Below are positions 4,764-54,441 of a stretch of 64,000 nt of DNA, piece after piece. Origin of the DNA: Eutreptiella sp. 'Long Island Sound 2002' (lineage: Eukaryota; Protista; Euglenida); NCBI GenBank assembly GCA_964036045.1, contig OZ038378.1, positions 200,756,001 through 200,820,000 of the forward strand, read 5' to 3'. Within the stretch, counting starts at the first letter, position 1, and the number at the start of each line of letters is the position of its first letter. The notes under the pieces were generated by a model that was not told the DNA's origin, did no database searches, and saw nothing but the letters and a program-made list of their open reading frames with translations. The position numbers and the translations under genes were made by a program.

Positions 4764-4963
4764 TACGATTTCAGGATTTTTGATGTTGGCAACCAGTGTT
4801 TCAAATGTTTCCATCAGATGTTTCGAAGGGTAACACAGTGGCCTCGCAAATTGAAGCGAAGAAAAGGGGGTTCATGGAGTGAACAGTCCCATTTAAAATC
4901 GCGTGATTTATTCCTCTCTGTGTGATGCCATGTTTTGCGTGTTTTTATTTTCGCCTGTTTCAG

Positions 4964-6270
4964 ATACATCTACAACATCACCAACGCCGTCACCAGCTGC
5001 ATCATCAACAGCAGCACAAACTACATCATCAACTGCATCATCAACTGCATCATCAACTGCATCATCAACTGCAACATCACCTCCGTCGCAAACTCCGTTG
5101 TACACCCATCTGCCCACCCCATCACAAACACCAACACGCTATCCAACACCCACAGCATCACCAACTGCATCACCATCATCAGAGACAGCCTCACAAACAG
5201 CATCACCAACTGCATCATCATCTGCATCCTCAACACTGTTACAAACTCTGAGGCCGACACCATTGCCCACACTGTCAGTAACACCAACACAACATCCAAC
5301 ACCAACCGGATCACGGACTGCATCACCAACACCAGCTGGGACGACATCACGAAGTCCATCACCAACACCGTTACCAGCTGCATCAACATCATCACAAACT
5401 GCATCACCAACTGCATCACCAACTCCATCACCAACTGCATCAGCGTCTGCATCACCAACTGCATCATCAACTGCATCATCAACAGCATCACCAGAGACAC
5501 CATCACAAACATCATCACTAACTTCAGCAGGAACTGCGTCACCAACTGCATCATCAACTGCATCCTCAACAACGTCACAAACTCCGAGGCTGACACCATC
5601 GCCCACACCGTCAGTAACACCAACACGACATCCAACACTAAGTGGATCACGGACTGCATCACCAACACCAGCTGGGACGACATCACAAAGTCCATCACCA
5701 ACACCGTTACCAGCTGCATCAACATCATCACAAACTGCATCACCAACTCCATCACCAACTGCATCAGCGTCTGCATCACCAACTGCATCATCAACTGCAT
5801 CATCAACAGCATCACCAGAGACACCACCACAAACATCATCACTAACTTCATCAAGAACTGCGTCACCAACTGCATCATCAACTGCATCCTCAACAACGTC
5901 ACAAACTCCGAGGCCGACACCATCGCCCACACCGTCAGTAACACCAACACGACATCCAACACTAAGTGGATCACGGACTGCATCACCAACACCAGCTGGG
6001 ACGACATCACGAAGTCCATCACCAACACCGCCACCAAATGCCGCATCAACTGCATCACAAACTGCATCATCGACACCAACTCGATCACAAACTGGATCAC
6101 CACCGCCAGAGATAGCTTCACGAACTCCATCACAAACAGTCTCACGAACATCATCACCAGCTGCATCACCAACACCATCATCAACACCATCGCAGACTCC
6201 ATCGCCAGTTTCATTGTCAACACTATCGCCCACGGCTTCCGCTGGGCTGTCGCCCACGCAGACCGCTAGC
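4964..6270 (+). repeat. Coding tandem repeat: three units of about 324-336 bp built on a 12-bp CATCATCAACTG subrepeat
   Basis: GAGGC(C/T)GACACCAT recurs at 5250, 5586 and 5910, and the CATCA(T/C)CAACTG subunit is pervasive. Confidence 0.9.
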
Positions 6271-9200: not shown

Positions 9201-10029
9201 CCCCGGCACGGGCGGCTGCGTGTGCCACCGCGACGAGACGAGCGGGCACTGGGACGGCGCAGCGTGCGACGTGTGTGCCGGCGGGTGGTCCGGGGCCATG
9301 TGTGCAGTGCAGTGCCCCCGGAACGCAAGCGGGGTGCCCTGTGGCCCCGGCCTGTGCCTTGTCGGCCAGTGCCTCTGCCCACCGGGAACGTGCGGGCGCG
9401 CATGCGACATCGCTGGCGCCAGTTGCGATGCGGCGGCCTGCCCCACCGGCTTCTACGGTGCTGGGTGCGCGCGGAGGTGCCCCCGGGACACCAACGACCG
9501 CCTGTGCGGCGCCCGCGGAACGTGTCTCGCGCGCACGTACGGCACGGGGGAGTGCGCCTGCGACGCGGGCTACACCGGAGCGACTTGCAGTTTTCAGTGC
9601 CCCCGCACGGCCGCGGGGGTCTGCGGGGGTCACGGCGTCTGTGTGGTGGAGGCCGGCGGCTGTGCCTGCTTCCCCGGGTATGGCATGCGCGACTGCTCCA
9701 AGGCATGCCCGTCGCACCGGGGGCTGCTGTGTGCTGGACACGGGACGTGCGACGATGGACCGAACGGCCGTGGCACGTGCGAATGCGCCGCGGGATACAC
9801 GAATCTGAGCTGCGGGGCGCTCTGCCCCGGGTTCGACCCATTGGCCCCCTTTCCCGAGGCGTGTGGAGGGCATGGGCTCTGCAACGCCCCGCAGTTGCAC
9901 TGTGACTGCCTGCGAACGGAGCGGACGGGGTACTGGGCCGGGGAGACTTGCGGGGACTGTGCCAGCGGGTGGTACGGTGGCGCCTGCGACAAGCCGTGCG
10001 TCCCTGGGCACGGGCGGACGGTCGGGAAG
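4964..10029 (+). CDS. Exon 2 (5,066 nt): mucin-like S/T/P repeats, REJ-like region, GAIN/GPS motif, TIG/IPT-like domains, tandem EGF/laminin-EGF repeats
   Basis: Core of ORF 4903..10545. Pyrimidine-rich acceptor ending TTTCAG|AT at 4963. WASDGT...CHTTHLTSFAV GPS motif at 7699-7800. Many CPG..CSGHG.C....G.C.C...W.G..C repeats. Donor AAG|GTGTGT at 10030 (phase 0). Confidence 0.92.
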
Positions 10030-11535
10030 GTGTGTCTCCGTTTGCTCGTTGTCGAGGCCGAAGTAGAGGTGGACCGTGGGCGACCTCCCAACTCCAGCGC
10101 GTCATTGCCCCGAGCGGCTGGTGGGGCTGGGCTGGCGGCCGGGCTCTGGGGGGAGGAGGGTAGACAGGAACCGCCGCGGCAAGAGCGTGGATCTCGGAGT
10201 GCCTCTGGAGCGCAATCAACAGCCCTCATGCACGGGCACGGGGGTGGGGGTGGGGGGTGGCTAGTGGAAAAGTATGTTTCATTCATTCAGAGCGGACCTG
10301 TCACGGGGGGCGCTCCTGGTCGGGACCCGACCCCAAAGGGGGGGGGGGGGACCCCCCCCTCTACGGACGCCAAAATTGTCGCACGGAACAATGTGCTTTG
10401 TCGGCGCCAGAGGCGCCGCAGATTTTGTTTTAGGCATACGGCAGGGGGAATTTTTCTTGTTCGACCCTATGTGTCTATACTCAAAATACTCAGAATTTCG
10501 TGGAGAATTCAAAAATGGCTGAAAAGCACAAGAAAGGTTATGTAGCCACCTTGCCCACAAGTGGGCCACTTCTGATTCTGCCCCCCGCTCTGCAGCGGAG
10601 GGGATCCCCCAGGGTGCAGGGGTTATGTAGCCACCTTGCATCTTGTTAGCTTTGTGTGTTTGCGCGCTTGGACGGGGACGGAAAAGGTGCTGGGTTTGGG
10701 TCAACGAAGGGGGGGGGTCCCCCCCCCCTTCGGAGGGGGGTGGGGTCCCCCCCCCCCTACAGCCCCCCAAACTGTCGAACACCCCTCGGGGTCACACATT
10801 GGCTGGCGGCCGCCCCCGTGGGACCTGTAGAAGTACCAAAGTTGCAGACTAGTGCTCAAGTAGGGGCGATGCTTTGGGTGTGCAACAGGGTGGCGTGCGG
10901 TGGCCATCAAGCCATCAGTGGGCACCTGGAATGGTTCAGGGGCAACGCAACATGGCCACCGCGGGTGGAATGCGCCACGGAGGGTCCACCAATGCGGGGC
11001 TAGGGCGTCTCGCTGTGCAAAATTATGTCCATCACACGATGTTCGGGGCCTCTTTACGGTGGTCGCATTCCGTTACCTGGACCAATTTACGGCCCATGGG
11101 AACAGCCCCCCCCTCGTTGCATAGGCCGGCAAAATGTACCATGTTTTGTTCTTATGGACGCAATCTGCAAGTGAGACATACCCCTTCTTTGAATGGCCCA
11201 GTGGAAACAGGAGGAGGCGTTGTGGGGTCCACAATCGGGCGGAGTGGTGCTCAGAGGGGGGCCGAGGGTACATGAGCCCTCCTGTACATCACAGCCAATG
11301 GTGCGTCCTAGGCATCAACACAGTGTCCACCTTGCAACACCCATCCAAACCCCTTTGCCCCTCCTTGGGTTCCTCGTGGCCCAGTGGTCAACGTATGGTC
11401 CTGAGTCCGAACCCCGCAAGGCACAGCGGCGAGTCCTGGGCTGAGAGGGGGTGGGGGGACAAACCTAATGTCACAGGAGAGATCCCTTCAGATGCTCAAC
11501 CTCAACCTCAACCTCAACCTTCCTCGCTCCCTCAG

Positions 11536-11981
11536 AAATGCCACTGCCACACCGGATTCGCCACACTGGACTGCCACGTGGCGTGCCCACGCAGCGAGAC
11601 TGGTGATCTCTGCTTCGGGCACGGGCGGTGCAACGATGGCCGTCTGGGCGACGGCAGCTGCGCATGCGACGCCGGCTGGTATGGGCCCAACTGCACTTGC
11701 AACCCCCAAAATTGCTACACCGGCAATGAGACGGCACCCCCACCGCGTGCCCGTTGCAACGATTTTACGGGCGCGTGCGAGTGCCAGCGCAACGCCAGCG
11801 GGTACTGGGGCGGAGATATTTGCAACCGCTGCCTGGACGGCTACTGGGGTGCCGCCTGCAACCGTGTCTGTGATTGCTGGGGCCACGGCTTCTGCGACCC
11901 TGTGGATGGCATGTGCACCTGCTTCAAGGACTCCGTAAAAGGACACTGGGCTGGCAGCCACTGCGACACTTGCGATGCTGG
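11536..11981 (+). CDS. Exon 3: EGF/laminin-EGF repeats (KCHCHTGFATLDC...CDTCDAG)
   Basis: Acceptor CTCCCTCAG|AAATGC in phase 0 continues GRTVGK|KCHC. Cys spacing as in exon 2. Donor GG|GTATGC at 11982 (phase 2). Confidence 0.88.
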
Positions 11982-12051
11982 GTATGCCTGTAAACTGGGG
12001 TAGTGAGGCCTGTTGTAGAGATTTGTGGAAAGTCGTGGAAGGTTGTGGACA

Positions 12052-13200: not shown

Positions 13201-14724
13201 GTTTTGCAGTGGGCCCCCACCCCCTGTGGAACGGCAGCCTTTTTGACCATCAGAGTGACTCCCTGCTTAACACGGGGTCGTTCCGTTGCTCGGGGGGTCC
13301 AAGGGGGAATAGAGCAGGCCTCTGGCCGGCCCTAACCCATAGCCCCTCTGCCTTCCTTCCGCAGTAGGGCCCAGGAGGTAATCACCTCGCAGAGGTTGTT
13401 GGATCAAAGCCAGGCAGGCGTATAGAGGGGAAAACGCCACATACCCCCCATTTTGGGCCTTTTTGGGCCTATTCGCGTACCCTACGCCAAGGGGTTGAAT
13501 TGTTAGTTTAACCCCTTATAAAATCATTATTTTGTCCAATAAACGCATCCCCCAATGAGTTTTTGGTCCGGACCCCTCCAGACCCCCCCCACTTGAAACC
13601 CACTTTTTTGAGGTTTTGAGGGAGGGGTGGGTCAAAAGATTCGAAAAAATGACCCCCCCCCCTTTTTGGGTCGAAAATCATGAATCTTTTGGTTTTTTTT
13701 TTTCGATTTTGAGCCAAAAAAGTGTTTCCGGGTCCCGACTCCATGGGGTTTGTATGGGGCGGAGTGGGACGAGCGCTTTATGCACTTCTGTTGGCGGTGT
13801 CGTCGACCTCAGTGACCCCGTGGTACCCACTCTGAGGGGTGTGAGTGGGGATGTTGTGACAGTATATGCCTACTAGGATACGGAAGGACATTTTTTGCAG
13901 TCTCTAGCCTTGGTGAGAGCCCGTCACAACCCGTGCCAAAGACGCCAAATGACTGTTTCCACCAATAATGGCCTAGTGAATGGGCCGGCCCACAACCTGC
14001 TTATGCGGTTTTTCACCCTGGGCAGCTCAAAAATCGAATTTTTCGAATCCTTTTTTTTTTTATAGCATGATCAACTAAAATGGCCATCCAAGCTATGTAA
14101 AGCATGTTTTTAGGCTGTATTTACATGTGTTTCACCCTATTTGGGTATTGGGCGGGCGGGGGGGGTCTCCCAAGGGATTAGTACACAACCTGCCGATGCA
14201 GTTTTTCACCCTAGGCATCTCAAAAATCGAAGTTTTCGAAACTTATTTTTTTTGATATTGTGATCACCTAAAATGACCATTCAAGATATGTAAAGCATGT
14301 TTCAGCGCGTAATTATGTAGCTTTTACCCTGTTTTAGGTGTGTGTTGCTTGGGGTAGGATCTCTGCGATGTGGACTTGCCGAAGGCAATAGAGTTTGGCA
14401 TTTGCCCTCCTGAATACCTGAATACGTGTGCAAGTGCCCAGCTAGCCCTAACCTGCTAGTCTCCTCACCGACCTTCGCCAGAGCATCTAGGACCTTACTG
14501 GGCCCCTGCCCTCCTTAATACAATGGGCGTTGCACACACACGGACACACACACAGGTGTTTTGTTTTGTTTGCCTGCAAGTGGTAACACTGCCATTGCTC
14601 CCCCCGGAGTACCGAAAACTCTACTCGAAAGCTCATCCCCGCGCCGACGCGCTGTCAGGCGGACCCCCCGCGGCCCTTGTGGTCTCAGTCAACATATACC
14701 CCCCCCGGGGACAACCACATCACC

Positions 14725-16561
14725 ATGGCGAAGATCTCTTTAGACCAACGCTCACTACAGGCGCTTCGCGACCTGATCAAGGAAGAAGTGGCATCAGCCA
14801 TCGCAGGGCCAGGGGCCCGCAAGGCGCACAACACACAGTCTTCAACGAAAGAGGACGAACTGCTCAGAACTATTCAGCAACTGAACCACACCATCCGTGG
14901 GCTCCGGGAAGAACTGGCCGCCGCCAAACGTGGTGGAGGTATGCAGTCACAGCAGCAGCAATCCTCTCCTGGATCTACTCCTCGGAAAGTGACTTACGCA
15001 GAGGCATTGGCCTCCAAGAAAGTGTCGGTCGAATGCACAGTGGCGGTGCAAGCACTGCCGACCCAAGGCGCCCCAGTGCAACCGGTGGCCTCTGCAGTGA
15101 GCAAAATGCTACGGAAGCACGAGTGTACTTCGGTCTTCCCTCTGGAAAATTACTCGGAGGAGGAGCGCAAGACAGAGCACATAAAGCAAGTCAAGGCAGG
15201 GAGGAAAGTGGCACACTGGCCCACCAAAGACGCGGCACATTTCAAACATGTCCTGCTGGTGGGGCACTCGGTGCACGAAGCGCATGTGATAGCCACTCAG
15301 GCTCTCAAATCTCACGACTGCATTCATTCAATGTCAGCAGCGTTACTGGCCACGGAAGCTACGCGCCAAGACGCGTCCGTCTCTCATGTCCTGTCATCAC
15401 TGGGCCGGTCACGAGACAGCCTGCTGATCACGGGGTGCTCAATGCACTCCACAGTGGTCACGGAGCGCATGCAGTGGACCACGGCGGAGAAGGGGGAGCG
15501 CATCTATCCGAAAGGCCATTTGCTGCTTGTGCAGTGGAGCAGGGTTTCACAGGTTTCCGAGGAAGTGAAGGACAGCGAGCCGGCACCTTTGCCACGCGAC
15601 AACACGGCGGTACGAGTGGTTTGCTCGTTGAATCCCCAGTCCCTGAGGGAAGGAGGCAACAGCACCAACAAGGTCAAGACCCAGAAATGGGCAAAGGAAG
15701 TATGCTGGGAGACCACTGCGCCTCTCCTCAAACCACCACTCACGACCCCCCCCCCCCCATGGTCGTGACCATGCGCCTGTGACACGGGGGCGTATGCGAG
15801 CCCAGTTTCCGTTGTCTCATCGCCCCATGGTCGTGGGGAAACGCGGGGGATGGCTCGAAGTCACCTTGGCACTACCGTATCCACTGGTGCAGCAAGTGCT
15901 CAAACAAAGCAGTGCACGGGAGGGCGTCCAGTACCGGTTGTTCCTGAGCAAAGACGTGAAGATCGAGGGGCTCCAAGCACACATGTGTTGGGTGAAACTG
16001 TCGCAGGCAAAACCCATTGCCCAGCTGCACCAAGCCCTGGCAGGACAGCCCTGGTTCGCTGGCCTCTTGTCCGGGGACAAGCCAGACAGAGTCGGAGTCC
16101 GGGTCTGGGGATGCCCAGTCCAACAACAAGTGAGAGCAGAGATTGCGAGTCTCCTGGGAATCAAATTCCAAGCTCCCACAACTACCGTCCGGGTGCGGGG
16201 GTATGGCCTGTCCTTCGGCCTCGTGTCAGGAGACCAGCAGGTGGCTCAAAGGGAAGCGGACAAAGTCTTTGGAGCCAATGTGGTCTCTGTCAAGCACACC
16301 AGGCACCTACAGAAGAGCGGTCTGGAGAGGCCAGTGTACGACGTGGAACTGACAGGGGTTCCGCCGACGTGGGAAGGCGAGGTCGTGCCAGCCGGCGACT
16401 CCCGAATGCCAGACAAGAAATGGCAGCGCATAGTACGAAAAACCCCCCCTCCCGTGTACCAGAGGGTAGGACCGAAGGCATCCCTGCCGGCAGTGGAGGC
16501 GAACGACAAGTCCGACGAGATGGACACGGATGCCAATCGAGAGGACCCGAACCTGCTTTGA
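14725..16561 (+). CDS. LINE ORF1 (about 611 aa if one C is removed from the C13 run at 15746-15758)
   Basis: ATG at 14725, N-terminal coiled-coil-like LRDLIKEE...LRTIQQLNHTIRGLREEL. ORFs 14677..15768 and 15779..16561 join by a single -1 nt correction. The C-terminal part is homologous to 48770-49202. Confidence 0.7.
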
Positions 16562-19500
16562 GAATCCTCCAGTGTGGGGACATCTCCCCGAACCTTGGCC
16601 CCACCAACACGGCGGGGGTACAGGTCATTAACGCCAATTGCACCTCACTGCACGCACACCACAGCACGATTTTTGATTATTGCGCAGACATAGTTGGCCT
16701 GCAAGAGACGAGACTAACAGCCTCAGGTCAGATATGCTTACAGGCCATTGCGGCCCAGCACGGATGGCAATGTTTTTGGGGCTGTCCGCTGGAATCGCCC
16801 ACAGGGGGGATATGGGGAGCAGCACAGGGAGGCGTAGGGTTACCCATCCGCAAGGGCTGGGTGGCCCGCATGGCAGAACGAGACAAGACAGACCCGGTGC
16901 AAGAACAGCTCTGGCACTCGGGCAGGTGGGTCCATGTTCAGGCCTGCCTAGGGGGGGGGGGGGGGGGCACATACATGAACGTGCAAGTCATTTACGGGGT
17001 GGCAGGGAAGGCAGCGCTGAACGCCGAGCTGTGGGAGCTGGCCAAGTGCTATACCAGTGCTTTGGGGAACACCCCACAGATCATTCTCACGGATACCAAT
17101 TTTGACCTGGACAACCCCCGAAAGATGCCATACGCCCCTCTGACAGCGCTTGCGGATGGGTGGCTGGTGGATGCTGACGCAGCCTTTGCGCAGTTACAGG
17201 GCGATGAATGTGTTAGCAAATACACACAGGGCTCCACACACACGCGCATTGATACTATGTTTATCAGTGCCACACACTTCGGCTGCGTTACGCAGGTGAC
17301 CGAAGTCCATGACCACGGGCTGCCGGGGCACACAACAGTGTGCTACAGTCTGGATTTGCAGGCTCCCTGCCAGTAGGTCGTCAAGTTGAGAAAAATTAAA
17401 AAGTTTGACCCCGCCCCGAGAGAGGACGAGGAGTCTATCGCATTATGCGACGCGCTACTCGCCCCCCACAAAGCAGTCTGGCAGCGCATGCTGGAGACAG
17501 GCCATTCCACAGACGATCTCTCGGCACACTGGACGTGGGTTGCAGCGGAGGTGGGGCTGGCGCTGGGCTGTCTGGACATGAGCTCAGAATCGCAGACCGC
17601 ACTGCCTTGTGAACCCAAAACGGCAGACAGAGGTCGGGGCACCGACCACATGCTCAAACACACCACCATGGGCCCGTCCCACACCACACGTTAGGGGGGA
17701 CCCCGCACTAAGCTGTTGTCTAAAATACAGGCGACCATGGGCTGCCTCAGGGACGTCATCCGCTGGGGGCCCAAAGTGGCCAGGCGGGAGGGGGGAAACT
17801 GCAGGGCAACAGCCAAGAAGCCCCTGAGCACGCTGCTGTGCAACACCCCTGTGGATGTAATGCAGGCATGGAATGCAGCATGCAGACGCATGAGGAAATT
17901 AGGACAGTCAGTCAGAGACGATCTCGAACTTCAAGACCTGCACCACCTCTCTCCAGACCCCCTCTGCGAGGTATCGCGGCCCATCCCCAGCCTGACGGAT
18001 GCCATGCGGCATTATGACAAGCTGCAGTTCTTAGGCCGCAAACTGGCCAAGCGAGAGGCCACTGAGCGCATCGCCAAGTGGAAAAAGAAAATGAACGTAG
18101 CCTGGTCAGAGTCACCCAGGGACATATATGCCTGGATCAAGAATGAAAGCTCAGCGCCCCTGCTGATGCTGAAGGACCCAGACACTGGGGAGCCCACCTC
18201 CAATGTCAATCGCATGGATAACATCCTGCATGAGGCCTGGGATAAGGTCATGCGTAAGTACGCAGACCAGGCCGAGCCGGACCCAGATATTTTCTTACGC
18301 AAGTACGCCCCCTTTTTCGGGGGGGGGGCAGCGGATGCAAACCACTCCACTCACAGGGGCGCGGCTCAGAAAACGATTTAAGAAAATGGGGCTGCGCACA
18401 TCCACAGGGCTAGACGGCTGGTGCGTCGCCGACCTCTTGTGCCTGCCTGATGTACTGCTCAACTGGCTTGCTGAACTGCTCACTGTCATTGAACACACTG
18501 GCCGGTGGCCGAGAATCGTGGCCCGTGGCTTCATTTCTCTTATTCCAAAAGGGGAAGGCATGCTCCCCATGCAGCAAAGACCACTGTCCGTGCTGTCTCA
18601 GATTTACCGAGTATGGGCGGGGGTTCGTTTGGAGGAATGCATGACATGGCAAGAAACCTGGATCCATCCTCAGGCCTTTGGTTTCAGAAAGAACAGAGGG
18701 GCCACAGACGCAGCGGGCATGATCTCCCTGCTAATTGAGTTATGCCATGTCATGCAAACGACCCTCATGGGTTTTGGGCTAGATTACGTCAAATGTTTTG
18801 ACCTCATTCCACAGCAGGTGGTTCTCCTGGTCGCCAAAGAAGAGGGCATGGATGAAGGGGTCCACAGGGCTTTATCCGGAATGTACGCCCAGCTCATGCG
18901 CTGTTTCAAAATTATGGCGTGTATGTGCAGTTTTTTCCAAGCCACCAATGGCATTCTTCAGGGCTGTCCCCTCAGTGTGACTTTAATAAACTTGCTGAAC
19001 AGCAATTGGAAGCGAGTCATGGACGCACAGGCACATGCAATCCAGGTGTCAGCAAACCGCATGCCACCAGGGGGATCTCCCACGGAAGCAGTGTCCTTCA
19101 TAATCCCGGCATTAGGGTACGTAGATGACACCTACGGATTCAGCACGGCGCGACCGCGCACGCAGCGACTGCTGGAGCGCACGGAGGAGTGGCTGACCGA
19201 CACAGGGAAGGCAGTGAACCCGTTGAAATCGGTAAGCTTTCAAGTCGGCCTTGCTGACAAAGATCCACTACGGATGGGGCGGGAACCCTTTCCTATTTCG
19301 ACAGAGTTTAAGTCACTGGGGGCAGGGGTGCGCACGACAGGGGATACCAGTTCGGGCCCACTCATCTTGCAACGTATTGCGCGTGCCGGCAAACTGCTGG
19401 ACAGGGTGCACGGAGCCCAGGGACACTTTGAACGGAGATGTTCCGTCGTCTCTACGATGATTACGGCCACAGGCCTCCATGCAGCGGAGATCGTGCCACT

Positions 19501-21748
19501 ACAGCCCAAAAGCCTAAGCTCCTTTGAGACCAAAATCAATTCCACCAATTGGGGTCCCTCCCGCCCAGCGCGGGCCAAGGAAATCGTTTTTTGCCTGCTC
19601 TGTGCAGGGCACAGGATCGCCCCCACCCTGATCATCCCGTATCAGTGCGCGGTATGGCTGGCAAAACTGTGCCGCACGCGGGGACCATCGCTTGTTTTGG
19701 CCCAGGCCATATGGGAGAAACACCCCTTACCGCAATCGGCAGGACCTTTCGGCAGGGCACTGCAGACACTGCACAATTGGGGCTGGACCCCAGCGCAAGG
19801 GTGGTGGGAATGGACAGCGCCAGGCGTCGACCAGCCCCTAAACCTCGTGGGAGACAAGGCGGAGGTCAAGCACCATGTTCGGGAACAGCTCAGGGCACAG
19901 CTGATAGCCCAGCTTATTCAGCGCAGGCCTCGACAGTTCACAGGCATGCACTACACCACTAACAGGCGTTTGGTCCCACAATGCATACTCTCTTTCACGT
20001 CAGAGCTCGAACGCTCTCTGCTACGCACCATCCTTGCGGGGGGGGTCTGGACAGCGCTGCGCGCACATCAAAGGGGCCTGCGGCCCACCTCTGACTGCCC
20101 CTTCTGCGGTAAGGCCGCAGAGACAGAGCACCATATTTTCTGGAGCTGTGAGGCATGGCACGACATCCGAGACTCTCACTCCCCCAATATCGAGCACCCG
20201 GCTTAGCAGTTTCCAGGACTGGAACGCACTGCCCACTGGCCCCCCTGCCTACTCACGTGTGGACTCGCGCCTGACATGCCACTGCCCGTCAACAGGCAGG
20301 AGCGCAACACCAGCCTAGAATTTTTACAGGCCATACATGCCATGTATGTGGCCATTCTTGCGGCCCGCAAGATTCGGGATGAGCAGGCCCCCATGCTGTT
20401 TCCCTCAGCCAGACATGTCAGGCAAACAGGGTATCCGTACCAGCAGCTGATAGGCCCGGTCCCGCGCACCGAAAATTTAGGCACGCTGACACTCGCCAAG
20501 CCCACATCCAAAACTTGGCCTTGGGAGCTACCCTTCTTAGCAGATTTCTTGTCCTGGACGCACCAGCTGGTTTGGGCAAACGAGCCAGGCACAATCACAT
20601 TCATAGAGCTCGCGCTCGATTTCGAGGAAACGTCACAGCGCACCCTACCTACAGCACCACAGGCCAAATACAGAGGGACAGCACTGCCGCTGCAAGAGCG
20701 CGCCAGAGTTCTCAGGCTGGCGTTATGCACCATGCAGAAATTGGTTACGCGGGGCGCCCTGCACCCCGCTAAAGTAATCACGAGGGCGAACTCTCTGGTC
20801 CCGCTGGGGGGGCCTCAGCAAAGCGGACTCAGCAGACGCCCATATTTTGTGTCCAGACAGGCCATGGTGGGGCATATTGCTAAGCTCAGTCAATACTGCG
20901 AAGAAACAGGGGCATTGCGCGCACACTCCAGACAGACCAAGGCACGCGCGTACGTGTACAGACACAGGCGCAGTCCAGCGGAAGTGGAAGAGGCCCGGAC
21001 CCAGCGGGCCCTCATGGGAGCGTTAAACACCGGGCCTATGCCCTCATCCTCGGACACCGCCAAAGGGGGGGGGGGGGGCTTCGCCGCAAATTTCTTCCCC
21101 GTCGTTGGGCAGGGCAAAAACCTGCAGTTGCCATATCATACAACCAGGCAACGCAAGTTCGCAGCGCCGCCGGCGCCGCAAGCATGTGTGACAGCACTGG
21201 CACCACATACATGCGCACGGGCTCTCGACCTATGCAGTACACACCAGCGCGCACCGTGCATCACATGCATGTGTCTGCGCAAGTCAGGGGACGCGTGCTG
21301 TGCCCTCGGACATCACCGGCCAGGATATGTGGACAGGCTGCCCCTGTCAGTCACGTGCCGCCAGCATGGACTGCCGGCTTGCGCCAGATGCACCAGAATG
21401 CAACGAGGGGTCCGAAACTGCTGTGCCAGAGGGCACCACAAAGTACACACGCCGGTGCGCAAGCGGCCAGCCGCGACGGACACGCGACCAGCTAAACGGC
21501 TGCGCACTGCCCGCAACCCCGCACGCACACACATGGAACATGCGCGCTCCCCGCACATACCGGCCACACCGCCCGCCCCAAAACGACGGAGACCCAAGTC
21601 ACCATGCCCCCCCTCCCCCCCCCGCCCCGCGGCCCTGCGAGATGATGGGCGAAGGAGAGCTAGAGCACGTCAGCCGACTTCTGTTTGGTGCGGAGCACGG
21701 GGGAGCTTCCACGGAAATCACATAAGTATGACGGTGCAGAGGTTCTGA
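16420..21748 (+). pseudogene. LINE ORF2: APE endonuclease + RT + zf-RVT + C-terminal Cys/His domain, disrupted
   Basis: APE motifs INAN, GLQET, VIYG, LTDTN, RID and GH. RT motifs LIPKG, RPLSVL, GFRKNRG, DYVKCFD, GILQGCPLS and YVDD. Zinc motif CPFC..ETEHHIFWSC. In-frame TAGs at 17374, 17692 and 20204, and a frameshift in the poly-G near 18320. The start codon is inferred. Confidence 0.9.
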
Positions 21749-22009
21749 CTTTTTGACCGCAGAGATCAGGCAGACCAATAAGGTACACACTCAGGTGTAC
21801 ACTTCGGCAAGCCAATCTCAGCACGCAGTCATACATGGGTCTCCCTCGTTAATAGCACAGTTCAGGCAGGCTCTAACCCGCTAACCCCTAACCCTCCCGT
21901 CGCAAGAGCGGCCAGGACATTAAAAGCCATCAACCCTCGTTAATAGCACAGAGCACACAGGCACACACACACACACACACAACCTATCTGGGGGGCCTCC
22001 AGACCACGC

Positions 22010-22220
22010 CGCGCCGCGACACACCGGGGGGCCAGGGGAGGGATAAGTCCTTCCGCCGCGCCGCGACACACCGGGGGGCCAGGGGAGGGATAGGGCAGGC
22101 TTCAGGCAGGCTCTAACCCGCTAACCCCTAACCCCCCCGTCGCAAGAGCGGCCAGGACATTAATAGCCATCAACCCTCGTTAATAGCACAGAGCACACAG
22201 GCACACACACACACACACAC
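22010..22220 (+). mobile_element. Short SINE-like element sharing the LINE 3' end, with a target-site duplication of at least 29 bp
   Basis: AACCTATCTGGGGGGCCTCCAGACCACGC occurs at 21981-22009 and 22221-22249. A near-identical body is at 27915-28095. Confidence 0.65.
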
Positions 22221-24517
22221 AACCTATCTGGGGGGCCTCCAGACCACGCAGAGCAAAGGAAATAATTTTTTGCCTCATGTCTCAGGGTCGCAGAATTGCC
22301 CCCTCCCTGCTAGTACCTTACGGCCGTGCCGTCTGGCTGGCAAGGCTTTGCAAAACACGCGGCCGAGCCATGATCACGGCACAAGCCGTGTGGGAAGAGA
22401 GCCCCCTCACACGCAAGCCGGGACCTTTTGGCCGGGAGCTAGAAACTCTGCATGAATAGGGATGGCGACCGCTCTCAGGTTGGTGGGAACGGCAGGTGCC
22501 GGGCACCACAGACGCCCTCCAACCGACAGGGGATTTTAAACAGATCAAGCACAGCATCAGGGAACCGTTGCGGTCACAGCAAATCACACATCTTATAGCC
22601 AGGCGGCCACGCCAATGTGCAAGCATGCACTATTACACAAACCGAATGCCGGTCTGCGCTAGCATCGCCTCTTCATTCAGAACAGGAACGCTTGCCGCTG
22701 CGCGCACTAGTGGCGGGGGGCGGCTGTGGACAGCAGTCAGGGCACACCAGAGGGGCATGATCACCTCCTAGTGCTGCCCACATTGCCAACAGGCAGATGG
22801 AACCGAAGTGCACATTCTCTGGGAATGCACAGAATGGGTGGCAGCCAGGGACCTACACATTGCCAACGTCTGCACCTTGGCAGCGAAAGTCCCACATCTA
22901 CGACCGTTTGACAGATGGCCCCCGTGCCTGAAAATCAATGGGCTCCCACCTGAAACAGAGCCACCAGTGAACAGGCAGGTTTAACAGCATGACTTCCCTT
23001 TCATACAGGCCCTCCATGCCATGTTTGTAGCCATACTTGCGGAACGCAAGCTGCGGGACCAACAAGCAACCAAACTCTTCCCCACAGTGCGCCCGCAGGC
23101 GCGCAGCGCACCGGGGCTGGCACTGTCCTTTTGCCTAGACCTTTGTGCGGTGTATTAACCTTGTGGTGTCCTCGGTGGCAGCAGTGCCATACCCTCCGCT
23201 GCATAAGGGTGCGGTGTGGGCACGGCGGTAGCCCGTGCGTCTGGCAGACGTTGGACAGTGGTCTGCGGTCTACATACCCTGGAGTGTGGTGGCCTTTGGC
23301 GCAGCACTTTGCCGCAGACAGGCAAAGCCGTTTACAAGTAACGCATGCCGGTAGTTTGTGGGTGGGGCATGCATGTGCTGATGTCATGTGAGAGGGGACC
23401 GCGATGCACATGGCTGGGGCTGTTGGTTGCGGTGCGCGGCTGCGCGTGGCCGTGTATCGGGCTTGGGCGGCTTCCCCCCCCCCCCCCCATAACAAGGTAA
23501 AAGTCCCCCGCAAAATTTGTCGCGCCCGCCCCCCCCTTAGTGCAGAGGGAAGATGAGGGCATGAGCCCAGTGTTCAAGCTACCCGTAAGTGCACGCTGCA
23601 GACGCGCCTCCTTGGCTTCTTGCTCCGTCTTTCTGCGACGATACTCGTACGGTCTGTGTGCATTAGTGCGCGTGTGCGTGCGCAGCGTCCATATGGACTC
23701 GCAGTAGGAAGCCAGATGTTGGATGTGCTTGTGCATGGGCGTCACCATGTGCAAAATATGGACGGCGATTGAGGCCCGCCACAGGCGGCCCGCCCAGCGG
23801 CACCAACAACGTGGCGCATGCATTGACTTTGGCTGCGTGGAGAGAGCCCGATTTGACCAATCTCTGAAGAGTGCATAGTGCCAGTCGCAGAACCCTAGCC
23901 CTCTCTTGCAGTGGTAGGGTGCGTCCCTGAAACTTAGCTCGGGGTGCTGCCGGCAGGGTGCGTGCCGCGTTCTCTTCAAAATCGAGTGCAAGCTCGATGA
24001 AGGACACTGTGTATGTGTCATCTCTCCATTGTATCGCTCGCAGCCAAGCCAGTAGGTCCGCCAGAAAGGGCTTTTCCCATGGCTAGGTGCGTGCGTTGGG
24101 GTTGTGTAGGCATACCGGGCACCACGCTCACCTCACTTACCACCACCGCCGCCAGCCCCCAAGCGATTGAGACCCAAATCCCCGATCCCCCCCTACCCCC
24201 CAGCCCCACGGCCGCAGGGGATGTAGGTGGATGATGGCGACACGGCAGTGGTGGGGACCCTATTTTCCATGGGACACGGGCGAGCGTCGTCGGAAGTTAG
24301 TTGAGCCCGCCACACCACAGAGGTTCTGACTCCGTGGATAAACGCAAACAGGAGCCTATGCACAGCCCCGCCCAAGTGCCGGGTTAAATATGCCGATTGC
24401 ACTGCTGCCACATATGGGTCTCCCTCGTTAATAGTACAAGTCGCAAGAGCGGCCAGGGCATTAAAAGGCTTCAACCCTCGTTAATAGTACAACGCGCGCG
24501 CACACACACACACACAC
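22221..24517 (+). mobile_element. 5'-truncated LINE copy 3 with an internal inversion (about 23111-24114)
   Basis: IWGASRPRRAKE...RDQQATKLFP on plus, SFIELALDFEE...CC..GHH on minus, then the 3' end, 3' core motifs and (CA)n on plus. Confidence 0.85.
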
Positions 24518-26529
24518 CAGTTTGCGGGCACGCACTATCACATGAACAGGAGACTCATCTGTGCCAGTATTGCATCCTTACAGTCGGAACATAAACGCTC
24601 AGTGCTTTGCACACTGCTGGCAGGAGGTCTGTGGACCGCGGTGAGAGCATATTAAAGAGGCATGATTACCTCCCAGTGCTGTCCTTATCGCCAGCAGGCA
24701 GATAAAGCAGAAGAGCACATCCTCTAGGACTGCACCGAATGGGCCGCGGCACCGGACCCGCACCTCGCCAGCATCCACGCTCTTGCGGCAAAAGTCCCAG
24801 AGCACCCACCTTTTGACAGATGGCCTCCTCGTCTGAAAATCAGTGGGCTCTTGCCCGAAATTGAGCCGCCAGTGAACCGTCACGTGGAGCAGCACGACTT
24901 CTCATTCATCTGTGCACTCCACGCTATGTTTGTGTCGGTACTAGCCGCGTGCAGATGAAGGGACCAACAAGCGCCCAAACTTTTCACCACAGTGCGTCAT
25001 CAAGCGCACAATGCATACCCCTATCACCAGCTTGTGGGCCCCATGCCCCCCCTCCATTACGTCCACTCTGCCTGCACAACCCTACAACACGCACCTGGCC
25101 GTAGGAAAGGCCCTTTCTGGCTGACCTACTGGCTTGGCTGCGCACACTGCAGTGGAAAGATGACACAGACATTGTGTCCTTCATTGAGCTTGCGTTGGAT
25201 TTTGAAGAACATGCAGGACACAGCCTGCCAGCAGCCCCCCAAGCCAAATACCGGGGACACACACTACCATTGCAAGAGACAGCCAGGGTCCTCCGTCTCG
25301 CCCTATGCACACTGCAAAAACCTGGTCAAGACGGGGTCGCTCCACCCCACCAAGGTCATCACGCGCGCTACGTCGCTGGTGCCGTTGGGCGGCCTGCCCG
25401 TGGCGGGCCTCAATCGACGCCCATATTTTGCGTGTCGCAATGCAATGCAGACGCACGTCAAGCATCTGTCATCCTACTGCGAGTTCACGTTGGCGCCGCA
25501 CACGCACACACGCACCAACGCACACAGGCCTTATGTTTATCGCCACCCGCGATCAGTGCAAGAAGTAGAAGAGGCATGCCTACAACGTGCACTCACAGGA
25601 AGTTTGAACACTGGGCTCATGCCCTCATCCTCCCTATGCGCTAAGGGGGGGGCGGGAGCAGCCAATTTCGCAGGGGATCTGTACCCCATCATGGGGGCAG
25701 GCAAAGTCACTCCCTACACAGTCACCCGCGGAAGAGTGCCGGTGCCAGCGGCCACGGCCACGTGCACCCCCTCTAATGTCAGCACGTGCGTGCCCTGCCC
25801 ACAGGCTACCTGCGTGCGTCACGTGTAAACGGCTCTGCCTGTCGGCAGTTGTATGCTGCTCCAAAGGCCATCACGCACCTGGGTATGTGGACCGCAGACC
25901 ATTGTCCAAAGTCTGTCCAAACCGCAGACCACTGTCCAAAGTGCATGGATTGCCGCCCTGCCCACGCTGCACCCTGATGCAGCGCGGGGTACGGCACTGT
26001 TGCCAAAGCGGACACCACAAGGATGTCACCCCTGACACCCTCACAAATCTCTGGGAAAGAGGAGAGCGGCAGCTCCCACGGGCGCCGGAAAACGTCCCCG
26101 GCTGCAGTATGCGGCCCCTGCACACTCGCGGATGCAACCACGCTCACCGCACATACCCCCAACATTGCCAGCACCCAAGCGACGGACACCCAAATCCCCG
26201 ATCCCCCCCTCCCCTCCAGCCCCACGGACGCAGGGTATGCAGTTGGATGATGACACAGCGGTAGTAAGGACCCTTTTCTCCCTGGGCCACGGGCGCGCAT
26301 CTTCGGAAATCACTTGATCCCGTTATACCACAGAGGTTCTGACTCCGTGGAAAGAAGCAAGGACAAATATATGCACAGCCCCACCCGAGTGCCGGGCTAA
26401 GTATACCAGCTGCTCTATAGCCACACGTGGGTCTCCTTCGTTAATAATCCGTGACCCATAACCCCCTCGCTTGATCCGTCGCACAGCGTCCACGACTTCA
26501 ATCGGCCCTTGCCCTCATTAATAGTTTGG

Positions 26530-26573
<44 letters not shown>
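24518..26573 (+). mobile_element. 5'-truncated, degenerate LINE copy 4 with (CA)n tail
   Basis: Starts immediately after a CA run at the QFAG.HY region. Contains SFIELALDFEE, LQRALTGSLNTGLMPSS and the Cys/His motifs, then the 3'UTR with CAGAGGTTCTGAC. Confidence 0.85.
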
Positions 26574-26575
<2 letters not shown>

Positions 26576-26586
26576 ACATGCGCGCT

Positions 26587-26832
26587 CAGGCCCCAGCACT
26601 GACCTGCACCGGGGTCCAGTCTTGTCAGGCCCCAGCAGCGACCCGCACCGGGCTCCAGTCTTGTCAGGACCCAGCACTGACCTGCACCAGGGTCCAGTCT
26701 TGTCAGGCCCCAGCACTGACCTGCACCGGGGTCCAGGCTTGTCAGGCCCCAGCACTGACCTGTACCGGGGTCCAGTCTTGTCAGGCCCTAGCACTGACCT
26801 GTACCGGGGTCCAGTCTTGTCAGGCCCCAGCT
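26587..26832 (+). repeat. 39-bp minisatellite, about 6.3 copies
   Basis: Consensus CAGGCCCCAGCACTGACCTGCACCGGGGTCCAGTCTTGT. Confidence 0.9.
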
Positions 26833-28049
26833 TTGACCCGGTGGTGCAGGGTGCTGTAGGGGATGCATCCCTGAGTGCCCCAACGCACGAGGAGCTGCCC
26901 ATCATCGGGCGCCCCGGCAGCAGCGAGCCGTGCGGTCTGGGCGTCACCGAGCAGGGCGCCAAGGTGTGCTCTGTGTGTACAGGTGCAGCAGCAGCAGGTG
27001 CTGCAGCAGCTGCAGTAACAACAGCTGTGGCCGCGGTGGCGGCCTTCAATGTCTTGGGGGTGCAGGCAGGTGCTCTCAGTGCCGCTGCGCGGGAGGCCGA
27101 CATCAAGGAAATGGAGGAGGAGGAGAGCTGCACCCGTGGGTGCATTGCTGAGCTGCAGGAGGCAGTGCTAGAGCAGCTGCACTGGGATTTCAGGGGTGGG
27201 GGCGCCGTGGGTTCTGCCCCCATGAGATGCCAGCCGGCACCAGGAGGGGTCCGGTTCTGCGCTAACCCGCCCCTGGGCTGCCTGCCCTGTGCGGCGTCCT
27301 GTGGGTCATCTGCTATTGGCTTGGGAGGGGGGGGGTGCTCCCCCCCCCCCCCCCCAGAGGACTCCGTAGGCAGCACAGTGGGATGGGGCTGCACCCCTCC
27401 CCCCTTCCCCTGCCCTGCACACGCACACACCCTGCCCCCCAGACCTCGGGGCCAAGGGACATGGGATGGGGTGGTGAGGCCGCCACCAGTGGCGCCAGAA
27501 CTCAGGTTGTGGCGCAGTCCACCAATGGGGAAATGGAGGGGCCCTGCCGGTTGCGACAACCGCCGGCCCCTCGTCCAGCGAAGGGGCACACTCGGTGCCC
27601 CGGGCAGGGCTGTCCCTGCGTGTCTCAGTGCCCCAGGCTCTATTTTGGGGGGAGGGGGATCACAATCACCCCTTCCCCGCGCGGCTACACATGGGGCGGC
27701 CGGCTAACGCAGCCGCCCGCCAAGGGGGCGGTCAGTCCGCCACAGGTCAGGTGGCGCAGGAGGGTCCACAGCCGGGGGCGGGGGGAGGCAAACCCCTGGA
27801 AGGGCGGATTAAGGTGCCAATGCCGACACATCAGGGGGGCAGCACGGCGCCCATCTTGGCGCATGGGAGGGCCTCAGGAGAGGTCACTTGATCGCGGGGA
27901 GAACGTCCTTCTGCTGCGCCGCGACACACCGGGGGGCCAGGGGTGGGATAGGGCAAGCCACAGGCACGCTCTAACCCGCTAACCCCTAACCCTCCCGTCG
28001 CAAGAGCGGCCAGGACATTAAAAGCCATCAACCCTCATTAATAGTTCAG

Positions 28050-28095
<46 letters not shown>

Positions 28096-28097
<2 letters not shown>

Positions 28098-28605
28098 ACA
28101 TGCGCGCTCCCCGCTCACGCCAGTCACCCCACAGCCCTCGAAGAGGCGGCAAGCATCACCCTCCCCCCCCAAGGGGGCATGGAGGAAGACCTGGACGCCC
28201 CCCCGCGCAATGTTCGCACAGGGGCATGGGAGAGCCCGCATTGAACACAGATAAGGCTCAAGGGACCATGAGGTTGTAATTCAGCGATAGGGGCGGGCGA
28301 AGTCACACAGAGTGCCGACTCTCATGCCAGCATGAATGGGGCTGCCGCCCTCACATCGCACATGGGTCTCCCTCATTAATAGTACACAGCGTCCAGGACT
28401 CTAATCGGCCCATGCCCTCGTTAAGAGTAGGGGGTGGGGGGGGGGGCTGGCGCAGCCAGTCCCTGTCCCATAACCCCCTCGCTTGACCCGTCGTACAGCG
28501 TCCAGGACTCTAATCCGCCCTTGCCCTTGTTAATAGTACCCCTAACCCTCCCGTCGCAAGAGCGGCCAGGGCATTAAACGCCGTCAACCCTCGTTGATAG
28601 TACAG

Positions 28606-28637
<32 letters not shown>
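28096..28637 (+). mobile_element. 3'-terminal LINE fragment (copy 2 subfamily) with stacked 3' modules and a (CA)n tail
   Basis: Colinear with 53990-54300 and carries four CCCTCGTTAATAGTAC-like motifs. Confidence 0.75.
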
Positions 28638-28639
<2 letters not shown>

Positions 28640-29003
28640 TTGAGCTTTGATTTAATACATTGGGCGTCACACACACACACACACACACATGTTGTGGAAG
28701 TGTAGGGAAGTGTAGGTTTTTGTATGTAAGTGCAGGGCAGTGTTTGGGAAGTGTCACTTAGGGAGTATGCTGGTAGATGCTGTGCCTGCTGAACCATTTC
28801 AGTGGAAAAGAGGTTTCTTGCGACGCCGTTGACTGCCGGCTGCTGTGAGTGGGGGGGCAGGGGTGTGGAGGGTGGAGGGGTGTGGGAGGGTTGGATGGGA
28901 TTGGGCAGTGTTGGCCACTGTCGCTGAGGGTCAAGTGTTGGAGAGGGTCGCCGAGGGTCAAGTCCCAATCACGCGTGACCCAGCCGCATCCATGTCAACA
29001 CAG

Positions 29004-29985
29004 GTATCTGTGGCCCACCTGCACTGGGCGCAACGAAGCAGTCGCACGCGGGACGGACATGCCGATGCAGCACTACACTGCAGACCTGGGGGCTGGGACT
29101 GTCGTGACAGATGAGGAAGAGAGGCTACTGTACGTCGGTGGCACGCCGTTGCTTGTGTTTGACATAGACGATCGGAAGTTGCAGGCGTCCATTGAGCTCG
29201 GGGGTACCATGCGTACGGGGCTGGTCCTCCCAGTGTCCCGGGACTGCTGCATCATTCTGCTGCTGCAGTACAGAACCGCAAATGGCAACGACCTCAGGCG
29301 CGTGCGACTTCCCCGGGGGCGCAACCTGGACTCCTACGAGCAGGACTCGCTGATTCCGGCGACTGCAATCCGGCTCCGGACGTTTCAACCGCTGGCGGCC
29401 CCCTCTGTCGAGACCGGGCCCAGAGTTGATGCCCTGACCCCCAGAGGCAGAGCCCGGCACAGAACGGCCCGGCCTCTGGCGACGGGCACTGTGTCGACGG
29501 AGTACGAGCGCACGTTCGCCTCGGCCCACGCACAGTACTACGTGGTGTACCGCGACGGTGAGCTGACGGTTGTGGTGCTGTATGAGGCCCCGGCGACCAG
29601 CCCGCAGCAGCTGGTGCTGCCGGCCGCCTCCGTGGGGCTAGAGCGCGTGCGTGCCGCCGCGCTGTGGTGCCCCTCTGCCGCTGAAGGGCGTTGCAACACC
29701 ATCGATGACCCTGCAGCGCTGCTGGTGGCGGGAACGAGTGGGACAGTGTGGCAAGTGGTGGTACTGCCCCTGCCCCTGGACAGCACGGCCGCCGCCCTCC
29801 AGTTCGTGCCGCTACATGACGTGGCCGCACCGGCCCTGCCTCAGTGCCGGAGCAGCCCCTGCCACTCGGTGGGGGGGCTGGTGACTGGTGACAGCAATAC
29901 CCTCTACATGGCCCTGGAGCAGGATTCAGGGGTCTTAATGGTGACCCTGGCCCTGGGTCCTGTACACGATGTGTCGGCACTGCAG
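29004..29985 (+). CDS. Exon 4: probable beta-propeller-like extracellular region
   Basis: Acceptor CACAG|GTATCTG in phase 2 completes CDAG|YLWPTC. Lies within ORF 28849..30039 and shows coding-like composition. Donor CAG|GTCATC at 29986 (phase 0). The domain call is inference. Confidence 0.8.
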
Positions 29986-30028
29986 GTCATCCCCCCTTCC
30001 CCTGCGTTCGATTCCTCGACCCTGCCAG

Positions 30029-30092
30029 GGGTTGTGTAGCTCAGGCATCTTGCACTTGACACGTGAGCTGGAGGTACCTGGTTCGAACCCCG
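30029..30092 (+). ncRNA. tRNA-like head (A box/B box) of a probable SINE or tRNA pseudogene
   Basis: TAGCTCAGG at 30037 and GGTTCGAACCC at 30080. The D and acceptor stems are not intact. Confidence 0.35.
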
Positions 30093-33919: not shown

Positions 33920-34525
33920 GTGATAAACAGCGCACCGCTTCCAGGGGTGAGTGCTGGCACCACCATCACGTCCCTTGTACACGACGGCCTCACGGATGCG
34001 GTGTACGTGGCCGCGCATACGCCAAACAATCCGAGCTTCATCTTCAAACTGCATGCGAAAGACCTGACGCCCTATGGCATGGTGCAGCTTAATCTCCGGC
34101 AAGGAGAGCCGGAGGTCGCACGCGCCATGGAGGCAGCGGTACGTTTGAGGCGCCTTTATGTGCTGACATCAGTGCAGCAGCAGCCAGTGCTGATCACGCT
34201 GCTGCTGTCTGCCGTCAGAGAGCTGCAGCCGGGGCTCGCAGACGCGTCAGGCGGAACCATTATTAACGTCATGGGCGAGGGCTTCGTGAACGGGTCCCTG
34301 TGCAGCTTTGGTGCCGGAATCTTGACGGCAACCACGCTGGTGCGCCCTGATTTGGTCCAGTGCGAGACTCCAGCGACGCCGGACTCGACGACTTGCTCCG
34401 GCAACGCGCTGGAGATTGTACTGACGGCGGGCGTTCAAACTCAGAACAGCGTCCGGCTGTGGCGCCCGGCAACGCCCACGGTGCTCTCCGTCGCGCCGAC
34501 AGGGGGCTACTACAACATGACGCAG
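33920..34525 (+). CDS. Exon 5: end of propeller-like region plus IPT/TIG domain (GGTIINVMGEGF...CSFG...CETP)
   Basis: Acceptor GTCCGCAG|GTGATA, ORF 33920, donor CAG|GTGCTC at 34526. Both junctions are phase 0. Confidence 0.85.
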
Positions 34526-34799
34526 GTGCTCATTCAATCGCGACAGTGCAGGGACAAGCGCTGCTTCTCTCAGTGCATACTGCGTCTATTTCTATCAGGA
34601 TCATCTTGCTCTGCTGTGTGTTTAATCTCCCTGCACCCCCTGCCGCTATACCTGTGGCAACCCTGCGCACTAGCCGCTGGGCCGCTGAGTGTCGGTGAGT
34701 GGCAATATGTCCCATTTTTTCCGCCGGCGAGTGCGGTGGTGTGATTTCACTCAAGGAACTAAGGGGAATATCCTCAGCCTCTAGAAGAATGGGTCAAAT

Positions 34800-54368: not shown

Positions 54369-54441
<73 letters not shown>
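48761..54441 (+). mobile_element. 5'-truncated LINE copy 2 (diverged subfamily) with a 2.2-kb internal inversion (50878-53084) and a long (CA)n tail
   Basis: ORF1 C-terminus, GDIHPNLGP and APE on plus. RT (GLHYVKCFD, GILQACPLS, YADD) on minus. ELGLDFEE and the Cys/His motif are on plus again. Confidence 0.9.

Follow-up and report, generated by a model that had tools for sequence, protein, structure and literature searches.

Introduction

Among the LINEs (long interspersed nuclear elements) that encode an apurinic/apyrimidinic-type endonuclease (APE), several are specific for microsatellites, namely MinoAg1 for AC, Waldo for ACAY, Kibi for TC, Koshi for TTC and Dong for TAA repeats (PMC3812793). 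The system described here lies in a window of 64,000 nucleotides from the euglenid Eutreptiella sp. 'Long Island Sound 2002' (assembly GCA_964036045.1, contig OZ038378.1, positions 200,756,001 to 200,820,000 of the forward strand), to which all coordinates below refer. Between 14.4 and 28.7 kb the window holds a co-oriented head-to-tail array of about 10-12 units of retroelements without long terminal repeats (non-LTR), nearly all with (CA)n ends. We consider it likely that at least four to five families of APE-type LINEs (counted as LINE-A, LINE-B, an older B-like family, LINE-C and further CA-tailed elements) insert through target-primed reverse transcription (TPRT) into (CA)n/(TG)n in a fixed orientation, sharing a 3' box and a (CA)n tail.

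The euglenid system appears to work like the known microsatellite LINEs and especially like Mino. MinoAg1 of Anopheles gambiae (R1 clade) is likewise an APE-type LINE found in AC/CA repeats in fixed orientation (PMC3812793), with TPRT and 5' truncation as a further likeness. MinoAg1 and Waldo live in insects, whereas the host here is a protist; in addition, the sequence profile of the LINE-A lineage finds the endonuclease of L1 and not the endonuclease structures of the R1 clade, the first open reading frame (ORF1) has no recognisable domain, and several families share both the target and the 3' box. Kibi (TC)n and Koshi (TTC)n, which are fish elements of the Tx1 clade, and Dong (TAA)n of the R4 clade are also microsatellite-specific like the euglenid LINEs (PMC3812793). 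They differ from the present system in repeat unit and host and probably in clade, since the only hints of Tx1 kinship here are one protein-atlas neighbour named 'Transposon TX1' and a zf-RVT match below threshold. The 3' tails of Kibi, Koshi and Dong consist of the target repeat itself, so that each insertion regenerates the target. For R1Bm and the Bombyx elements SART1 and TRAS1, the 3' end of the RNA reportedly pairs with the nicked target, and co-oriented arrays are said to form in the tandem-repeat target; the likeness to the euglenid LINEs would then lie in RNA-target pairing that sets the start of reverse transcription and in the co-oriented arrays, while the targets differ, being rDNA or telomeres for those elements and a dispersed microsatellite here.

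Within the library that could be searched, our literature search returned no account of a CA-targeting LINE from Euglena or any other protist. From animals, LINEs that target AC repeats have been described before (MinoAg1), and what is new is a clear example in a protist. In the published E. gracilis assembly, LINEs account for 1.5% and unclassified repeats for 33% (PMC11252322).

Genome-wide association of LINE-A with CA runs

The junction set comprises 27 LINE-A copies (7 full-length and 20 5'-truncated) distributed over many contigs of the whole 2.28-Gb genome. In 26 of the 27, a same-strand (CA)n directly adjoins the 5' end or ends no more than about 12 bp 5' of it. A sequence-only reading of this DNA had proposed a LINE family that targets (CA)n and had suggested tabulating the flanks of all genomic copies; with that tabulation made, the proposal is upheld by most 5' junctions. 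All 7 full-length copies start with GGTGTTTTGTTTTG directly after a same-strand CA run, and in 19 of the 20 truncated copies, which have 20 different truncation positions, the truncation point coincides with a CA run or is no more than about 12 bp away from one; the lone exception is a copy interrupted by other DNA. TG was found at 0 of the 27 LINE-A 5' junctions. Runs of (CA)≥6, counted by their C-initial starts (B(CA)6), number about 35,000 per strand in 2.28 Gb, which gives a random site a probability of about 4 × 10−4 or less of lying within 12 bp after a CA run. The adjacency is far beyond chance, because approximately 0.01 of the 27 junctions would be expected to show it and 26 do.

Spliced-leader copies provide a negative control. 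The query, presumably the Euglena spliced leader, finds about 5,600 copies in the genome (0 with the reversed control), of which about 7 adjoin a CA run; the association belongs to these LINEs and not to retroposed DNA generally. The junctions themselves also carry a signature of the target, as the 13 LINE-A junctions that are free of filler continue the phase of the CA run by at least one base in 11 cases and by at least two bases in 4. This C/CA microhomology (11/13; binomial p of about 7 × 10−5 at 0.3) agrees with the earlier suggestion that 5' truncation points fall at CA-like microhomologies.

Several of the upstream runs used by LINE-A belong to long microsatellites of impure sequence or stand beside unique DNA that shows no tail motif. 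About 10 of the 26 used runs follow a recognisable retroelement tail, compared with 6 of 20 random CA runs. It follows that CA runs of any kind serve as the target, with the elements' own tails used roughly in proportion. Exact box-plus-CA tails (368 forward matches vs. 0 in the control, about 370 per strand) make up approximately 1% of the CA runs of the genome. As for the idea that the tails regenerate their own target and so extend the arrays, new copies do bring a CA tail, but any CA run is targeted and self-extension is a by-product. On the 201-Mb contig, the exact box-plus-CA matches lie nearly all at 0-36 Mb and 141-200 Mb, with 3 in the central 105 Mb.

Organization of the array

The array sequence was read directly, scanned with TRF (Tandem Repeats Finder) and BLASTed against the whole window, which is situated 146-210 kb from the end of the 201-Mb contig. 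The combined TRF and regular-expression (regex) scan recovers all the CA-run ends listed in the sequence-only reading, and the eight (CA)n runs of the array, given below with their units, are all on the + strand. Counted over the full 64 kb, runs with six or more units number 19 for CA and 2 for TG, and the 3' box CCCTCNTTAATA occurs in 11 copies on the + strand and 0 on the − strand; together with the self-BLAST of the window, which resolves one full-length LINE, two longer 5'-truncated LINEs, a composite unit, a 3' fragment and short tail fragments, these counts bear out a head-to-tail array in a single orientation. The units are as follows (TSD, target-site duplication).

14398-14554, + strand: 3' end of an older retroelement, tail ...CCCTCCTTAATACAATGGGCGTTG, (CA)n 14533-14554, 5' limit approximate (sequence, TRF; box match at 14509)
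14555-21860, + strand: full-length LINE-A copy, 7,306 bp, start GGTGTTTTGTTTTG, end ...GGGTCTCCCTCGTTAATAGCACAG (Pfam, homology, genomic copies)
21861-21981, + strand: 5'-truncated LINE-C 3' end, 121 bp, with its own (CA)n 21954-21981, joined to the LINE-A end without a CA spacer
21982-22009, + strand: first 28 bp of the truncated LINE-B; with 21947-21981, left TSD copy of the next unit
22010-22221, + strand: LINE-C 3' fragment, 212 bp, (CA)n 22194-22221, flanked by a TSD (CA run plus 28 bp)
22222-24517, + strand: 5'-truncated LINE-B of intermediate age, double 3' box, (CA)n 24501-24517 (self-BLAST; best genomic relatives 82-89%)
24518-26573, + strand: old 5'-truncated LINE, distantly B-like, (CA)21 26532-26573 (self-BLAST; best genomic relatives ≤77%)
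26574-26587, + strand: GGACATGCGCGCTC, 14 bp, left TSD copy (CA run plus 14 bp); found again as the start of the unit at 28096
26588-28095, + strand: composite low-copy retroelement, (CA)22 28052-28095 (TRF; 3-7 other copies, 72-93%)
28096-28637, + strand: LINE 3' fragment plus three stacked tail modules, (CA)15 28608-28637 (self-BLAST)
28638-28689, + strand: 30-bp stub from a further CA-tailed element (...TTTAATACATTGGGCGT), then (CA)11 28668-28689, last unit of the array (self-BLAST, regex)
53975-55150, + strand: second, smaller co-oriented array (regex scan)

The first run (14533-14554) is the probable landing site of LINE-A, and the tail of the unit to which it belongs is similar to 28652-28692 by self-BLAST. 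The 28 bp at 21982-22009 are homologous by reading to LINE-A 19548-19575, and the unit at 24518-26573 is collinear with LINE-A 20600-21632. In the 212-bp LINE-C fragment the first 37 bp are a partial internal duplicate, and the genomic copies match from position 38 onward at 97-100%. The composite unit is built from a 39-bp × 6.5 tandem repeat (26586-26838), a GC-rich body and a LINE-C-like tail from 27834, which is 86% identical to the LINE-C reference. In the unit that follows it, the stacked modules (approximately 28384-28430, 28431-28537 and 28538-28607) are joined without CA; here 28084-28387 is 81% identical to 53983-54292, in the second array, and 28538-28637 is 94% identical to 27982-28081. 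The pieces of the second array, each ended by (CA)n, are the 3' fragment of a LINE, the tail of a LINE-C, a SINE (short interspersed nuclear element) whose tail reads ...TTGGGCGT and an element whose tail reads ...CCCTCTTTAATATTG.

Two of the short units, at 21861-21981 and 22010-22221, had been taken for SINEs. That assignment is abandoned, since both are homologous over at least 2 kb, at about 98%, to other LINE-C copies that carry a LINE-A-like C-terminal ORF, and they are severely 5'-truncated LINE-C copies of 121-212 bp. The description of nearly every unit as starting right after the CA run of the previous one is accurate for most of the array; two units begin 28 and 14 bp past the run, because those bases together with the CA run form target-site duplications, and the junction at 21860/21861 has no CA between the units at all.

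Two further observations concern individual elements. LINE-B carries an in-place inversion of about 950 bp (23159-24112) relative both to its neighbour (25069-26022) and to LINE-A, and since its segments run forward, inverted and forward, it departs from the pattern of classic 5' twin priming. Within the tail of LINE-C, at 21873-21894, 22113-22135 and 27971-27992, stand three imperfect repeats of the telomere-type CCCTAA (CTAACCCGCTAACCCCTAACCC).

Growth of the array by repeated insertion

The units of the array are of strongly differing age. Identity to genomic relatives is 95-98% for LINE-A, 82-89% for LINE-B, at most 77% for the unit after it and 97-100% for the LINE-C fragments, and the array was therefore built by repeated insertion over a long time and not by one event or by duplication. 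As judged from these divergences, it appears to have accreted by re-insertion, with units of very different age standing head to tail. The earlier claim that the array grew by insertion into the CA runs of previous copies accords with this, in that unit ages differ and each copy brings a new CA tail.

Two target-site duplications record such events at base resolution. The segment 21940-22009 is exactly repeated at 22180-22249, so that the end of a tail, an impure CA run and 28 bp of the LINE-B start bracket the 212-bp LINE-C fragment; a tandem duplication of 21861-22249, which has a 240-bp periodicity, was rejected in favor of insertion with a target-site duplication. For the composite unit the bracketing duplication consists of the box, the CA run and the 14 bp GGACATGCGCGCTC (26505-26592 vs. 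28025-28114), and self-BLAST gives 94.9% identity between 26512-26587 and 28032-28109. Such duplications fit TPRT in which the first nick lies at or inside the (TG)n strand and the second a few to 28 bp downstream. Among 16 LINE-A copies examined, none has a target-site duplication extending beyond CA, and this suggests that the CA run usually receives both nicks.

CA-less fusions and the 3' box

A second class of junctions lacks the CA spacer. All five 5'-truncated LINE-C copies are joined to a LINE tail at ...TTAATA(G)(CAC), and 8 fusions of a LINE-A end to LINE-C show 8 different breakpoints, so that these fusions are recurrent and independent. Within the window they are found at 21860/21861 and in the stacked modules at 28384-28607. 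Joining through CA, as first described, holds for most units, and the CA-less fusions form a second route to the head-to-tail structure.

The 3' box, (GGGTCT)CCCTCGTTAATAG followed by the (CA)n tail, is conserved in sequence across families, whereas a conserved RNA structure at the box is not supported by RNAalifold on seven tails, which returned only a 3-bp GGG/CCC mini-stem without covariation. The independent recurrence of the fusions suggests that the reverse transcriptase (RT) may have jumped onto the 3' box of a sister RNA, or that nicking may have occurred exactly at the boundary of box and CA. Chimeric L1 retrocopies and R2 template jumping are products of RT template switching, and the CA-less fusions seem to resemble them. 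In L1 chimeras the partners are U6 or arbitrary RNAs; here a sister LINE, through its conserved 3' box, repeatedly serves as the acceptor.

Taken further, template jumping within single integrations could have produced most of the head-to-tail structure, the units and the intervening CA runs being co-inserted and not targeted. The frequency and independence of the CA-less fusions speak for this possibility, as do the youth of both partners at 21860/21861, the common type of the stacked modules and, at the genomic locus L046, a LINE-C tail adjoining a unit capped by the spliced leader. It does not account well for neighbours that are joined through CA and yet differ widely in age (≤77%, 82-89% and 95-98%), nor for the many upstream CA runs that are unique-flanked or belong to long impure microsatellites. 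Besides the CA run, the target-site duplications take in 14 or 28 bp from the older unit downstream, which implies insertion into a pre-existing junction. We regard template jumping as the main source of the arrays as unlikely.

Some genomic copies have ends of unusual structure. At the 3' end of L046 (G000:C20:4251140-4253332) the LINE-C tail (...TTAATAGCAC) directly adjoins the Euglena spliced leader and another element, and at L020 that other element occurs again, there lacking the leader and preceded by a LINE-A/LINE-C tail. L022 (G000:C10:61278315-61279075) is palindromic, reading unique sequence, (TG)n, inverted tail, forward tail, (CA)n and the same unique sequence inverted, and it looks like a product of twin priming or of a hairpin.

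Coding content and affinity of LINE-A

LINE-A has the features of a LINE, with a non-LTR RT, an APE N-terminal to the RT, variable 5' truncation with a common 3' end, target-site duplications and no long terminal repeats. ORF1 spans 14736-15782 and ORF2 approximately 15850-21748, the latter comprising in order an N-terminal region, a 2A-like GDISPNLGP (16577-16603), the APE (approximately 16618-17373), RT and zf-RVT (18203-20206) and a Cys-rich C-terminal part (20276-21748). The RT is recognized by Pfam RVT_1 with an E-value of 9.5 × 10−13 (18203-20206), and the zf-RVT match has an E-value of 1.9 × 10−5 at 25.7 bits, under the cut-off of 27.5. The APE region (16600-17373) is 43% identical (E-value of 1 × 10−59) to the Pfam Exo_endo_phos region of the relative P0029. 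With phmmer the APE of the window copy has no match among solved structures at E ≤1, and a profile of relatives is needed for recognition. Pfam finds nothing credible in ORF1, the N-terminal region of ORF2 or the C-terminal 490 aa, even at E ≤10. Two motifs in ORF2 are kept within the lineage: the 'PGP' of the 2A-like site stands at the same place in the consensus of ten relatives, diplonemid sequences included, and a lineage-conserved Cys/His motif (C..H....C..C.........CC...H), for which Pfam has no match, is twice repeated at 21160-21450 in the C-terminus.

The six other full-length LINE-A copies are 91-97% identical to the window copy at the 5' end. The window copy has three TAG stops in ORF2 (17374, 17692 and 20204) and a frame change near a G run at about 18320. 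At the three TAG positions every other copy that covers them has CAG (or CGG/CAA), and the stops are accordingly C>T nonsense changes private to the window copy, which is dead. Programmed read-through of the three in-frame TAGs was ruled out by the CAG of the other copies.

An exhaustive HMMER search gives 6,961 relatives of LINE-A, and the named sequences among the best full-length relatives are diplonemid transcripts from Rhynchopus and Diplonema. Against solved structures, the lineage profile built from ten relatives matches human L1 ORF2p with an E-value of 4 × 10−54 and R2 with 4.5 × 10−30; L1 ORF2p is the best solved match in a comparison set that holds no full-length I, Jockey, CR1 or R1 structures. 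The same profile finds the L1 endonuclease (E-value of 3 × 10−4) and does not find the TRAS1 and R1Bm endonucleases at E ≤0.1, a weak test on solved structures that speaks against membership in the R1 clade. The Ingi clade of trypanosomatid LINEs is marked by the order APE-RT-RNase H with an N-terminal 2A-like sequence; the 2A-like site here does precede the APE, Pfam finds no RNase H in the window copy, and RVT_3/RNase H is present in two relatives. Taken together, the protein comparisons point to LINE-A as an APE- and RT-bearing lineage of an L1-like group of Euglenozoa with diplonemid relatives.

Proposed mechanism of insertion

In the mechanism that we favor, namely TPRT into CA runs in fixed orientation, the (TG)n strand would be nicked inside the run or at its edge, and the nicked 3' end would pair with the element RNA at its CA tail, thereby priming cDNA synthesis. 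The 5' end of the cDNA, in many cases already 5'-truncated, would then join the strand that bears CA by means of 1-4 nt of C/CA microhomology. A second nick within the run would yield a duplication of CA only, and one 14-28 bp beyond it a target-site duplication made of the CA run and unique bases. As each insertion would leave a fresh 3' CA run, earlier copies could become targets and co-oriented arrays would accumulate. A second process, without a CA spacer, would have the RT jump between element RNAs onto the 3' box, or the nick fall at the box/CA boundary. The strand that is nicked first, the part played by tail annealing and by endonuclease specificity, and the template jumping are what we infer from the junctions. 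The specificity may come from an APE that cuts CA, or from annealing of the CA tail to a nicked (TG)n.

Several points weigh against this mechanism. The APE of the window copy matches Pfam Exo_endo_phos directly with an E-value of 0.042, and a G replaces the catalytic D of the PDH motif found in its relatives. About a third of LINE-A and LINE-C 3' ends have no CA run, another co-oriented element following directly, and template jumping to a different CA-tailed RNA possibly brought in some of the upstream CA runs. The presence of the upstream run before the insertion is suggested indirectly, by upstream microsatellites that are long and impure, by flanks of unique sequence, by differences in age and by target-site duplications that contain CA. 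A 'stringent' recognition of the 3' end would follow from conservation of its sequence only, and the structure of the array is that given by the assembly.

A different explanation dispenses with targeting and has the copies accumulate passively in CA-rich, low-recombination or subtelomeric DNA, or multiply by unequal crossing-over or tandem duplication between CA runs; passive retention has reportedly been argued for Waldo-A/B of Drosophila. The closeness of the window to a contig end, the concentration of box-plus-CA matches toward the ends of this contig and the 240-bp periodicity at 21861-22249, which resembles tandem duplication, are what such a process might be expected to leave. The junctions are nevertheless base-precise and strand-specific throughout the genome (26/27), the units belong to different families with different truncation points, the 240-bp repeat is explained by insertion with its target-site duplication, and the spliced-leader copies do not sit beside CA runs, which makes the passive account very improbable. 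An assembly artefact that collapsed repeats or chained them through CA runs is scarcely credible either, for although long homopolymer runs are abundant, frames break at them and assemblers have difficulty with CA runs, no two junctions are alike, family, truncation point and divergence vary from unit to unit, and the same junction grammar recurs at 27 independent loci on many contigs.

Implications for euglenid genomes

Beyond the targeting itself, we tentatively entertain a wider picture that we hold at somewhat less than even confidence. Here LINE-A, LINE-B, LINE-C and others would form a guild of Euglenozoa-specific, L1-like LINE families that share a 3' recognition box and a safe haven in (CA)n, build arrays through CA re-insertion and RT jumping, and are maybe a significant source of CA microsatellites; it would be the first microsatellite-targeting LINE system to be described outside animals. 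The idea of a microsatellite source is based on the retroelement tails carried by 6 of the 20 random CA runs mentioned above.

From target-specific LINEs one can learn how mobile DNA reaches safe sites of insertion, and they are used as models of programmable insertion. If a deep-branching protist lineage has a CA-specific system, with several young families and hundreds of copies, this would show that microsatellite targeting has evolved repeatedly, and would offer a tractable case for separating endonuclease specificity from annealing of the RNA tail. It would also account for co-oriented repeat arrays and for part of the CA microsatellite load of a 2.3-Gb euglenid genome.

Neighbouring features of the window

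Upstream of the array lies an open frame of 1,880 aa with teneurin-type and laminin-type EGF repeats (4903-10545 and 11134-12003), and an IPT/TIG match is found at 33920-34744; the two are possibly exons of one large surface-protein gene. Copies of an AT-richer, satellite-like repeat of about 196 bp occur at 2640-3303 and, immediately upstream of the array, at 14000-14396. Downstream of the array, the ORF at 28849-30039 corresponds to the called protein P0205. More debris of LINEs of the same lineage lies in 48367-53100, with APE-like and LINE-C-like pieces on the + strand (48367-49663) and RT plus zf-RVT on the − strand (50990-52816). Downstream of the second array, an impure CA/CCCA/CGCA microsatellite of about 490 bp extends over 56300-56790 on the same strand.

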